A stretch of DNA of 64,000 nucleotides from Entomortierella parvispora E1425 (Eukaryota > Fungi > Mortierellomycota): positions 186,001 to 250,000 of the forward strand of contig BQFW01000008.1 in the NCBI GenBank assembly GCA_020891255.1, read 5' to 3'. The notes below the pieces were generated by a model. That model saw only the letters and a program-made list of their open reading frames with translations. It made no database searches and was not told the origin of the DNA. The translations under genes were made by a program, and so were the position numbers. Position 1 is the first letter of the stretch. Each line of letters starts with the position of its first letter. Shown here one piece after another: positions 8,899 to 14,578 of this stretch.

Positions 8899-10191
8899 AT
8901 GATTGCCCTTCAGACCGCAACTGTGCTGGCCGCAGTGTTCTTGTCGACAGCCAACAGCGCTGCCACTCCCACTGCCAGCTACCTCCCCCAGACATCACCC
9001 ACTTACCTCCCCTCCTTCCCTGCTCAGACTGGTGTCATTACCTCATGGCCTCCAGCCGACCCCTCTGCTCCTTTGCCCTCGGGCCCCCTCTCAACCGCCA
9101 CCCTCACCCTTTCTGGCTACCCCACTATGAACGTACCTGTTGCCAACGCTTCCGTCGATCCCAACATCATTCCTATCATGAACTTGATTGACTGGACTCA
9201 TGTTCCTGACGCACCCGTTACCACCAACACGACCATTGTCCCCGCTGGCGATCCCTACTGTTGGTGGACCCAAGGAGGATGTGTTACCCCCAAGATTAGC
9301 TACATCCCCCCAGATATTTACATCTGTCCTGTTCCTGACACCTGGGGTTTGACCTATGATGACGGTCCCATGTACTACTACCCCGTTACGCCCGAGAACT
9401 CCGTATGGGCCGAGCCCAACTTGTACGACTTCTTGCTCGCCCATAACAACCAAAAGGCCAACTTGTTCTACATTGGTTCCAAGATCATGGGTGCCCCAAT
9501 TGCTGCCCAGCGTGGATTGAACGACGGACACACCATCTGTGTCCACACTTGGTCCCATCCTTTGATGACCACTCTCACCAATGCCGAGGTTGTTGCCGAG
9601 TTCTACTACGGCTTGCGTATGATCAAGGAGGTCCTTGGAATCACGCCCAAGTGCTGGCGTCCTCCATATGGTGATGTTGATGATCGTGTCCGTGCCATTG
9701 CCTGGCAGATGGGTCTGCGCACCATTATTTGGGACCAGGACACCAACGACTGGCAGATTGTCGGTGACCAGGTTGCCCCCACCAGCTCCTCGATCTCTTA
9801 CGCCACCGCCAACAACACCGTTGAAGGATGGATTGCTAACCACGTCAAGGGCAACGATACCCAGCACGGCCACATCACTTTGGAGCACGAGTTGTCCAAC
9901 GCGACCATCACCCTTGCCGAGTTCTGGTTGCCCACCATCCAGAAGTTGTACCAGACCATGCCCGCCACCGCCTGTAACAACATTGCCCAGCCTTACTGGG
10001 AGGAGAGCTTTGTTTACCCGATTCAAGGAGACCAAGCCGTGAGCACTAACGGAACCGCCGTTGGTGGCAGCACCAGTTCTAACGGCACCACGACGCCCAA
10101 GATTGTGTCGTCTGCCGCTACCAAGTCTACTCAGGTCATGGGCTCTGTCATGACCCTTGTTGTAGCTGCTATCATGGCTTCTCTCCTGTAA
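8899..10191 (+). CDS. CDA: Chitin deacetylase (CE4/NodB polysaccharide deacetylase), secreted, probable GPI anchor
   Basis: Intronless 430 aa with signal peptide and all five CE4 motifs (TYDDGP, HTWSHP, RPPYG, DTNDW, ITLEHE), followed by a Ser/Thr tail and hydrophobic C-terminus. Confidence 0.95.
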   Translation: MIALQTATVLAAVFLSTANSAATPTASYLPQTSPTYLPSFPAQTGVITSWPPADPSAPLPSGPLSTATLTLSGYPTMNVPVANASVDPNIIPIMNLIDWTHVPDAPVTTNTTIVPAGDPYCWWTQGGCVTPKISYIPPDIYICPVPDTWGLTYDDGPMYYYPVTPENSVWAEPNLYDFLLAHNNQKANLFYIGSKIMGAPIAAQRGLNDGHTICVHTWSHPLMTTLTNAEVVAEFYYGLRMIKEVLGITPKCWRPPYGDVDDRVRAIAWQMGLRTIIWDQDTNDWQIVGDQVAPTSSSISYATANNTVEGWIANHVKGNDTQHGHITLEHELSNATITLAEFWLPTIQKLYQTMPATACNNIAQPYWEESFVYPIQGDQAVSTNGTAVGGSTSSNGTTTPKIVSSAATKSTQVMGSVMTLVVAAIMASLL

Positions 10192-11260: not shown

Positions 11261-11965
11261 TTTGCGCCCATGGAGCACGCGTAAACTACAGTACCCGGTT
11301 GAACCATGCACCAGGATACTAAAATTACAGCAGTTTTTTTTTTTTTTGCGTTTTCCCGTTTGATCCGCAAGTGTCTCTGATTGTTTGGTCCCGTCAAACC
11401 TCTTTGCAAAACGCCCTTCAGTCTTGTTTCACCAAATGCTTGTACCGGGTCCTGTCTAACGGTTCATTACAATCAATTTTTACGCCCCTTGGAGCACGCG
11501 TAAACTACAGTACCCGGCCGAACCATACACCAGCTCCTACGCATCCGTTGTTCCAATGATACTAAAATTACAGCCATTTGATCCGCAAGTGTCTCTGATG
11601 GTTTGGTCCCGTCAAACCTCTTTGCGCCCTTCAGTCTTGCTTCACCAAAGTCGGGTCCTGTCTAATGGTCACTACAATCAATTTTTACGCCCATGGCGCA
11701 CGCGTAAACTACCTGATCGAACCATACATCAGCGTCTCCAATCCTTCAGATCCGTTGTTCCAATGATACTAAAATTACAGTACAGCAGTTTTTTTTTTTT
11801 TTTTTTTTTTTTTTCTTTTTTTTGGCGTTTTCTCATTTGATCCGCAGGTGTCTCCGATTGTTGGGTCCTGTCAATTCTCTTTGCAATACGCCGTCCAGTC
11901 TTGCTTCACCCAAACACTTGTGCCGGGTCCTGTCTACCACTTACTCTACTCATTACAATCAATTG
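11261..11965. repeat. Degenerate tandem array of three ~205-280-nt non-coding units
   Basis: Blocks gcacgcgtaaactac, gatactaaaattacag, tttgatccgca(a/g)gtgtctc, cagtcttg(t/c)ttcacc, cgggtcctgtcta and tacaatcaatt recur three times in the same order (units start near 11261, 11480, 11686). Indels between copies break the reading frames. Confidence 0.9.
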
Positions 11966-12029: not shown

Positions 12030-12362
12030 CTATGACGATGATGACGAAGAGGGGGCTGAAGGCGTAGTGTCCTTGTTTGTACTTGGTTCTGCTGGCGTGG
12101 CTTGTTGATCAGCAGCGGAAGAGGAGGCCGAGCTGGGAGCAATGGCAGCAGCTGTTTTGTCGGCATCGCCTCTCATTTCCGCGGCTCTAGTCTCCTGAAC
12201 GACCTTGTAATCCCATGTTCCTTTGCTTTCTCTGTTCGGACAAGTGGTTGGATACACGTAGTTAGTGTTTCCATCGATCTGCGCTGCTTCACCCCGAAGG
12301 CACCCTAGAGAGAGGTCCATCGCTATCGCGATCAATTGCTTCTGACTCTTTTCTTGTTCCTG

Positions 12363-12393
<31 letters not shown>

Positions 12394-12499
12394 AGGCTTA
12401 CCTCTGGTATTTCTTGAACATGGGTTCCCAAACGTACATGCCAGACATGACACCGACGGTGGCGGCAATGATGACGGGAATATTGCGGTTAAAAGACAT
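12030..12499 (-). CDS. 99-aa single-pass membrane microprotein, PIGBOS1-like
   Basis: Exon 1 12499-12402 reads MSFNRNIPVIIAATVGVMSGMYVWEPMFKKYQ and ends at a GTAAGC donor. Intron 12401-12232 has an ACTAAC branch site and CAG acceptor. Exon 2 12231-12030 is in frame (RESKGTWDYKVVQ...SSSS*). The supplied ORF track does not capture the spliced product. Confidence 0.8.
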
Positions 12500-12562: not shown

Positions 12563-12598
12563 CAGACAGACAGACAGACGGACAGACAGACAGACAGA
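12563..12598. repeat. (CAGA)n microsatellite in the microprotein/PEX2 divergent intergenic region
   Basis: Visible run cagacagacagacagacggacagacagacagacag. Confidence 0.85.
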
Positions 12599-13016: not shown

Positions 13017-13283
13017 ATGACCAACACTTCGCCCTTCTGGGAGCCAGACTGGAAGCGGGTCCAAGCTCCGCTCTCGGCCCTCCGTCGCCAGCTTGCTTCC
13101 TTTCCCTCCCCTCCCCTGCGCATCATGAAAGTCAGTCAACTGGACGCAGAGCTGTTGGACGACGAACTCTTGGAAACCATGAAGGAACAGCTCTGGAGTG
13201 CATTCTCGCTTTTCAAGGTAAACGTTGAAAAAGCGTTGTCATATGATAAATACGCAGATCAGGTTGTACTGACCCATCAGAGC

Positions 13284-13317
<34 letters not shown>

Positions 13318-14578
13318 TTTTTAGCCATCCTTCAAAGAAAAGTTCAAGCCCGAGCTGGCCTTGGCCTTGAACCTGGTCATGTACAAGTTTTCAGTATACG
13401 ACATGGGCGCTACTTACGGATCGCAGCTTCAGAACCTGATTTACAGAAACGAACGGAAGCACAGTGGTGGATGTAAGTCCGAAGGGTGTCTATGTAGATA
13501 ATCTTAATGGCTGTTGGGTCATGCTGCATATCTCTTTTGCTGATTCAAAGGCCATCTTTCTCTTCTTGGACAACAATAGTACAATCGACTGCAAGAGATG
13601 CGCCGTTGACAAAGACACAAAGAATCGCCTATGGCGTCGTTACCGTAGGAGGACAATATGCTATGGAGCGTGTGAACCGCGTAGTGACCGCACAAGGATG
13701 GGGCGAGCTTCCAGAAGACAACATTAAACGGAAGGCATGGAATATTTTGCAGAAGGGCGGCAGTGTTTTCAGGATAGTGTCCTTGATCAACTTTTTGGCC
13801 TTCCTCTATGCCGGAAAGTAAGACTACAAATCGCAGGCTGGTTTCTCGACCATGGGAATCTGAGGACGAAATGCTGATCAGATCTTGCGTCCTACTTTTT
13901 ATTCAATAGATACCGAACCATTTTGGAGCGTGTCCTGTCTATGAGACTCGTCTATGCAGAGCGCAATTCGAATCGTCAGGCCAGCTTTGAGTTCCTGAAC
14001 CGACAGATGGTCTGGCACGCATTCACAGTAAGCTCCTCGTTTCGTTGGCCCTAGGGGGTTGCAGGACTTTTTCATCTGGAGCTGAAAGATTCTAAACCCA
14101 CCTCTCGTTCTGCCCGTCTCTGTTTCTTTAGGAATTCTTGATGTTCTTGATGCCATTGATCAACGTGTCAAAGCTCAAGAGGAATGTAAAGAGGATGCTC
14201 CTGCCTGCAGCACTCATGTCTGCCAACGAGCTTTCAGTCTTGCCAGCTCATATCTGTGCTATCTGTCACGAGAACAACAACGGCGTAACAGCGACCCCAG
14301 GAGCATCAACGTCGACCACGATCCACAACCCTTATATCACCAACTGTGGACACGTGTATTGCTATTATTGTATCAAGACCAAGATGATGATTGACGACGA
14401 ATGGTGCTGTCTCCGATGTGGCAAGAAGGTGGATTGGATTGGTCGACATGTGGAAGTGGCAGAGGACAAGGCGCTTCAGGAAAAGGCAGATAGCGAGGCC
14501 GAGGATGCCGATGACGAAGAGGAGGACGAAGATGTCGAAGGAGAGATGGACGGCAAATTCGACGAGAAGACTCGTTAA
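13017..14578 (+). CDS. PEX2: Peroxin-2, peroxisomal RING finger E3 ligase
   Basis: Five exons with canonical GT-AG introns. Pex2/12 N-terminal motifs (RIMKVSQLDAELLDDEL; ATYGSQLQNL; SFEFLNRQMVWHAFTEFL) and C-terminal RING CAIC...CGHVYCYYC...CLRC. Confidence 0.95.

Follow-up and report, generated by a model that had tools for sequence, protein, structure and literature searches.

The best-described relative of the gene analysed here is human PIGBOS1 (PIGB opposite strand 1), which encodes a protein of 54 amino acids, lies opposite PIGB and has its coding sequence within one exon. Its product, PIGBOS, is reported to sit in the mitochondrial outer membrane by way of a signal anchor, its C-terminus facing the cytosol, a topology based on split-GFP and biochemical data (PMC6814811). 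PIGBOS oligomerises, requires residues 30-36 for binding of the ER protein CLCC1, and dampens the unfolded-protein response (PMC6814811). According to a 2026 preprint, it also takes part in ER-to-mitochondria calcium transfer, again via the C-terminal region. One domain of CLCC1 is a homologue of yeast Brl1/Brr6 (PMC13061601), so that fungi have a candidate partner family. In the founding paper (Chu et al. 2019), PIGBOS was said to have no homologues (PMC6814811). A further small fungal mitochondrial protein that enters the comparison is yeast Ecm19 (YLR390W), which is reported to promote Dnm1-dependent fission and to affect redox gene expression, mRNA binding being another of its reported functions (PMC12642899).

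The locus described here lies on the minus strand of a 64,000-nt stretch of DNA from the soil fungus Entomortierella parvispora (Mortierellomycota), referred to below as the window. Its product shares with human PIGBOS1 the Pfam family PF23670 and a single N-terminal helix at about residues 7-29 (the human transmembrane segment being placed at 7-29; PMC6814811), and its conserved core of about 55 residues is similar in length to the whole human protein. Both proteins carry the pattern G-x3-G-x-Y-x3-P in the helix region, followed by a conserved charged segment, the animal side of this comparison being taken from the Pfam profile and the human helix string quoted with the original prediction. 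By eye, that string is identical to the fungal helix at 7 of 20 positions. Unlike its human counterpart, the fungal protein has an extra disordered tail of 43 residues rich in Ser, Ala, Thr and Pro, and an intron interrupts its coding sequence. The synteny known from human is likewise absent at this locus, as no PIGB/GPI10 gene lies opposite the fungal gene.

Gene model and conservation of the intron

The gene occupies positions 12030-12499 on the minus strand and comprises two exons and a 170-nt intron, giving a protein of 99 amino acids, of which exon 1 contributes 33 residues and exon 2 contributes 66. Translation starts at the ATG at 12499, the earliest start codon past the upstream in-frame stop on this strand. 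The coding part of exon 1 (12402-12499, 98 nt) comprises codons 1-32, beginning with the start codon, and the first two bases of codon 33, and thus encodes a short N-terminus, the transmembrane helix and the beginning of the juxtamembrane motif. The intron (12232-12401) interrupts the reading frame in phase 2. It has a G|GTAAGC donor at 12401, a branch site matching the fungal consensus ACTAAC at 12266-12261, 30 nt ahead of the acceptor CAG at 12234-12232, and a run of 29 T inside (T29, 12363-12391). Exon 2 runs from 12231 to 12030, including the TAG stop codon at 12030-12032. Its conserved beginning (12177-12231) completes codon 33 with a single base and encodes residues 34-51, with the ESKGTW motif and the start of a second helix, and its distal part (12033-12161) encodes the low-complexity Ser/Ala/Thr/Pro tail, residues 57-99, which is variable in length and sequence and predicted to be disordered.

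A database search with exon 2 retrieved the NCBI entry EMPS_05724, 'hypothetical protein EMPS_05724 [Entomortierella parvispora]' (P0001 in our numbering), which is letter for letter the 99-residue product; scripted excision of 12401-12232 from the genomic stretch reproduces it exactly. The original prediction of two exons with clean splice signals and a product of 99 amino acids is therefore correct in every particular. Alternative open reading frames overlapping the locus on both strands gave no Pfam family match, the sole weak hit falling below the cut-off on an open reading frame in the frame of exon 2. A search of the intron and its flanks against Rfam for snoRNA or other RNA families returned nothing near the thresholds. 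As the intron sequence is moreover not conserved, an RNA gene within the intron was rejected.

Selection on the coding sequence was evaluated by aligning the window with the loci of Gryganskiella, Linnemannia and Podila, so that four Mortierellaceae species were compared including E. parvispora. Over codons 1-56, pairwise differences at codon positions 1, 2 and 3 amount to 15.8, 8.6 and 48.8 %, respectively. Within the intron, 52 % of aligned sites differ and indels are numerous, and its length ranges from 111 to 170 nt; in these four species the exons are conserved and the intron sequence has diverged. In a wider set of 15 Mortierellaceae orthologues (94-115 amino acids), residues 1-51 vary little or not at all, and this conservation passes the splice junction without a break. 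The stretch from E34 to W39 as well as Y41, V43-Q45, T47, R48 and E51, all encoded by exon 2, show no variation in these 15 proteins, which past about residue 56 turn into the variable Ser/Ala/Thr/Pro tail.

The position of the intron is kept while its sequence has diverged in loci L001, L002, L003, L004 and L007. A phase-2 intron in the Arg codon after Y-x occurs in Umbelopsis nana (Mucoromycota) and Piptocephalis cylindrospora (Zoopagomycota) as well as in the four Mortierellaceae; the same codon and phase were counted in seven species, and three fungal phyla are represented. Comparison of L004, L007, L005 and L006 further showed that the Jaminaea gene (Basidiomycota) is intronless and that the Diplodia gene (Ascomycota) has two introns at other positions. 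Because the intron is common to Mortierellaceae, Umbelopsis and Piptocephalis, absent from Jaminaea and not found at this position in Diplodia, it is, judging from these alignments, old and was lost or moved in Dikarya. It follows from this cross-phylum comparison that the 12402/12231 junction, named in the original prediction as the point to be verified, is both old and conserved. Purifying selection and the conserved intron support the predicted gene model, and the comparative data are strong evidence that the two-exon gene for a putative single-helix membrane protein of 99 residues in the PIGBOS1 family is real.

In public sequencing runs, the best share of sampled words from the locus was 0.06, and four such runs gave no contig there; this 6 % of word matches probably stems from the T29 and (CAGA)9 repeats. 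The latter is a microsatellite at 12563-12598 that, together with a C11 run at about 12625, lies in the presumed 5' leader or promoter. In Podila verticillata (L002:3001-3414), the orthologous intron has a GC donor (cagag|GCAAGG) rather than GT, at the conserved position.

Membership of the PIGBOS1-like family

The Pfam family PF23670, 'PIGBOS1-like', has a curated gathering cut-off of 27 bits and a profile of 54 positions, equal to the length of human PIGBOS. Exon 1 alone scores 44.6 bits against this profile (E 1.6e-11). The full protein reaches 51.6 bits (E 1.1e-13), with residues 1-48 aligned to profile positions 1-49 of 54; the match therefore continues into exon 2. All 15 Mortierellaceae orthologues match the family as well, and over residues 1-56 they are 73-91 % identical.

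The word search reached no further than Mortierellaceae. A search of 1.84 billion representative proteins with a profile built solely from Mortierellaceae N-terminal domains (A3) returned 22 proteins at E values up to 0.001 and extended the range to six fungal phyla. The named matches outside Mortierellaceae (E 2e-7 to 9e-4) come from five further phyla: Mucoromycota (Umbelopsis, Absidia, Hesseltinella and Pilobolus), Glomeromycota (Entrophospora), Zoopagomycota (Piptocephalis), Basidiomycota (Jaminaea) and Ascomycota (Diplodia and Aspergillus). Wherever a precomputed Pfam assignment is on record for a protein matched by this profile, it is PF23670. One match, the 376-residue P0025 with internal repeats, was rejected as a false positive.

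An alignment of 20 fungal sequences from six phyla (A4, from which P0025, P0018, P0019 and P0022 were left out) shows G16, G20, Y22 and P26, in P0001 numbering, to be invariant in all 20, with R5, P8 and A12 nearly so. In most of these sequences [LF]-x2-Y follows, with G-T-[WFY] a short distance beyond, the G-T-aromatic motif being common to most fungal relatives. The pattern G-x3-G-x-Y-x3-P-x-F-x2-Y, originally put forward from a comparison with the human helix, is thus recovered in its core across fungi.

On the animal side, the nearest neighbours listed in the Atlas include PF23670 clusters from Basidiomycota, Ascomycota and Chordata, the chordate clusters having a feature score of 0.84. 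Ranked by structure, a chordate 'protein PIGBOS1' cluster comes first (TM 0.51/0.52 over 41 residues). Animal proteins were absent from the returns of the word searches, which need shared 5-mers, and of the HMM search, which is limited by library size. What ties fungi to animals is hence the curated Pfam profile together with the Atlas clusters rather than sequences aligned directly, and these data support a family that would span fungi and chordates. Within it, the locus is almost certainly the E. parvispora orthologue, with a profile score of 51.6 bits against a cut-off of 27, and the proposed kinship with PIGBOS1 stands as a statement of homology. No paralogue was found in the window, and a search of solved structures gave no relative, the best E value of 0.25 being noise.

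Several family members have C-terminal ends of their own. Jaminaea and two further relatives (P0026, P0027 and P0037) have in common the end K-T-G-D-G-K-V-V, and Diplodia and two further relatives (P0032, P0033 and P0035) carry Trp-rich ends; such lineage-specific additions may be second functional motifs. P0030, a protein of 72 amino acids from a 1-kb contig with no taxon on record, is a family member with an Asn-run tail. If it is not fungal, the PIGBOS1-like family may extend past the groups named here.

Predicted membrane topology and possible functions

The protein has one hydrophobic segment, residues 7-23, with a moderate Kyte-Doolittle maximum (mean 1.91), in agreement with the single N-terminal transmembrane helix that had been proposed; the helix string originally quoted corresponds to residues 12-31. 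From hydropathy, the alignment and a low-confidence AlphaFold2 model, the predicted helix is placed at residues 7-24 (12428-12481, minus strand), where it contains the packing motif G-x3-G as part of the invariant G16-x3-G20-x-Y22. One Arg precedes the helix and four basic residues (K29, K30, R33 and K36) follow it, a charge pattern that fits a signal anchor. The AlphaFold2 model (mean pLDDT 50) has helices at residues 7-33 and 41-62 and a disordered tail; it was not used for fold searches, because its confidence is too low. Beyond the membrane segment, the strongly conserved and positively charged juxtamembrane stretch Y-x3-P-x-F-K-K-Y-Q-R-E-S-K-G-T-W is split by the intron, and a second helix reaches to about residue 60, after which the variable disordered tail follows. 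In profile coordinates, residues 30-36 of human PIGBOS correspond approximately to fungal residues 29-35 (K-K-Y-Q-R-E-S), which are invariant or nearly so in Mortierellaceae.

The explanation that accounts best for these features overall is, more likely than not, a small type-I-like signal-anchor protein. By analogy with human PIGBOS, its helix would probably serve as an anchor in the mitochondrial outer membrane, leaving the C-terminal part exposed to the cytosol. The helix could also self-associate via G-x3-G, although we lean slightly against this step. Rather unlikely, yet specific enough to be named, is binding of the cytosolic juxtamembrane segment to a putative partner in the ER or nuclear envelope, perhaps a member of the Brl1/Brr6 family. 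A role of the fungal protein at organelle contacts, as originally proposed, would be carried over from human PIGBOS.

The same family could have another job altogether. In that case the protein would be a factor of the inner membrane, or of both membranes, that assembles or stabilises complexes III and IV together with an Rcf1/HIGD2A-type factor, and it would have no part in signalling at ER-mitochondria contacts. When proteins co-purifying with human PIGBOS1-FLAG were quantified, HIGD2A was enriched along with subunits of complexes III and IV and metabolite carriers, and the authors of that work tie PIGBOS1 to OXPHOS assembly (PMC8664129). These co-purification data fit an inner-membrane role, and single-helix microproteins of similar size include many respiratory-chain factors (PMC7066179). 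On the other hand, the split-GFP and biochemical experiments place human PIGBOS in the outer membrane with its C-terminus in the cytosol (PMC6814811), and the fungal protein does not have a presequence-like N-terminus. We regard this respiratory role as the leading alternative, though an unlikely one.

A second alternative would make the family identical to, or close kin of, yeast Ecm19, so that its fungal members would act in mitochondrial division. An Atlas cluster named 'Protein ECM19' (about 88 amino acids, Ascomycota) indeed lies near P0001 in feature space, just behind the PF23670 clusters, scoring 0.86 against the full-length protein and 0.81 when residues 1-56 are taken; scores below 0.9, however, are leads only by the tool's own rating. 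The cluster moreover does not carry PF23670, no protein named Ecm19 is among the matches of the exhaustive HMM search (1.84 billion proteins) or of the word searches, and the fission and mRNA-binding functions of Ecm19 (PMC12642899) have no counterpart in the PIGBOS literature. As no mammalian orthologue of Ecm19 is known (PMC12642899), a link between Ecm19 and PIGBOS would be new, but it is most unlikely on these data.

Scarcely tenable, finally, is the idea that the two-exon model is an annotation artefact in which a chance, unexpressed open reading frame of 33 codons happens to look like a hydrophobic Pfam profile: biased matches to profiles of transmembrane segments can occur, yet the strong third-position substitution bias of the core against an unconstrained intron, the conservation running over the junction into exon 2, the intron codon and phase kept in three fungal phyla, the orthologues in six phyla and the want of any Pfam match above cut-off among overlapping open reading frames refute it as far as comparative data can.

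A more far-reaching reading would be that PIGBOS1 is a mitochondrial microprotein of ancient opisthokont origin, that its fungal members work with the membrane-remodelling family Brl1/Brr6, the fungal kin of CLCC1, and that Ecm19 may be its diverged budding-yeast form. This combination is very unlikely. If true, fungal genetics would offer a tractable model of the human PIGBOS-CLCC1 axis, and Ecm19 would acquire the mammalian counterpart it lacks. Because the family spans Mortierella to Aspergillus, has four invariant residues and contains an old intron, questions about PIGBOS could be taken to fungal genetics, among them outer versus inner membrane, CLCC1 versus a respiratory-chain partner, and the job of G-x3-G.

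Annotation status and genomic surroundings

The gene had originally been described as hidden, which did not prove to be the case, and its link to the PIGBOS1 family is not new either. NCBI annotates EMPS_05724 exactly as modelled, and more than 40 Mortierellaceae assemblies contain annotated orthologues. PF23670 already takes in fungal proteins, more than 50 fungal records carry it, and Ascomycota database entries are named 'PIGBOS1-like domain-containing protein'. Since the gene is annotated, the Pfam family includes fungi and automatic names exist, both the locus and the family link were already known, and with gene and family assignment public, the picture of this locus hardly changes. No paper on fungal PIGBOS1-like members was found in the open literature searched.

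The expectation that gene callers would easily miss such a gene stood up in part. Among the database models of Mortierellaceae orthologues, several are plainly flawed: in P0018 the N-terminus is falsely extended and the model runs on into the intron, the first exon of P0019 is spurious, the junctions of P0022 and P0016 are displaced, and P0002 and P0065 are single-exon fragments. In view of these six models, 'easily mis-called' is a fair description, and gene callers treat this small two-exon gene unevenly.

Upstream and divergently oriented from the gene, at about 13125-14578 on the plus strand, is a multi-exon gene for a Pex2/Pex12-type RING peroxin (PF04757, E 3.8e-10, plus a RING finger). 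The head-to-head pairing with a Pex2/Pex12-type gene recurs in Gryganskiella (L003), while a mitochondrial carrier takes the place of the peroxin in Linnemannia (L001) and Podila (L002). Directly 3' of the gene, at 11267-11913, a unit of about 218 bp occurs two to three times in tandem, the copies being 82 % alike. The array ends with a run of 35 T (T35, 11789-11823), has a second T run inside (about 11335-11348), and could represent satellite DNA or else a small non-autonomous element. Past the array, on the plus strand at 8899-10191, lies a gene for a polysaccharide (chitin-type) deacetylase (PF01522, E 1.6e-24), the product of which has a signal-peptide-like start and a hydrophobic end resembling a GPI-anchor signal.
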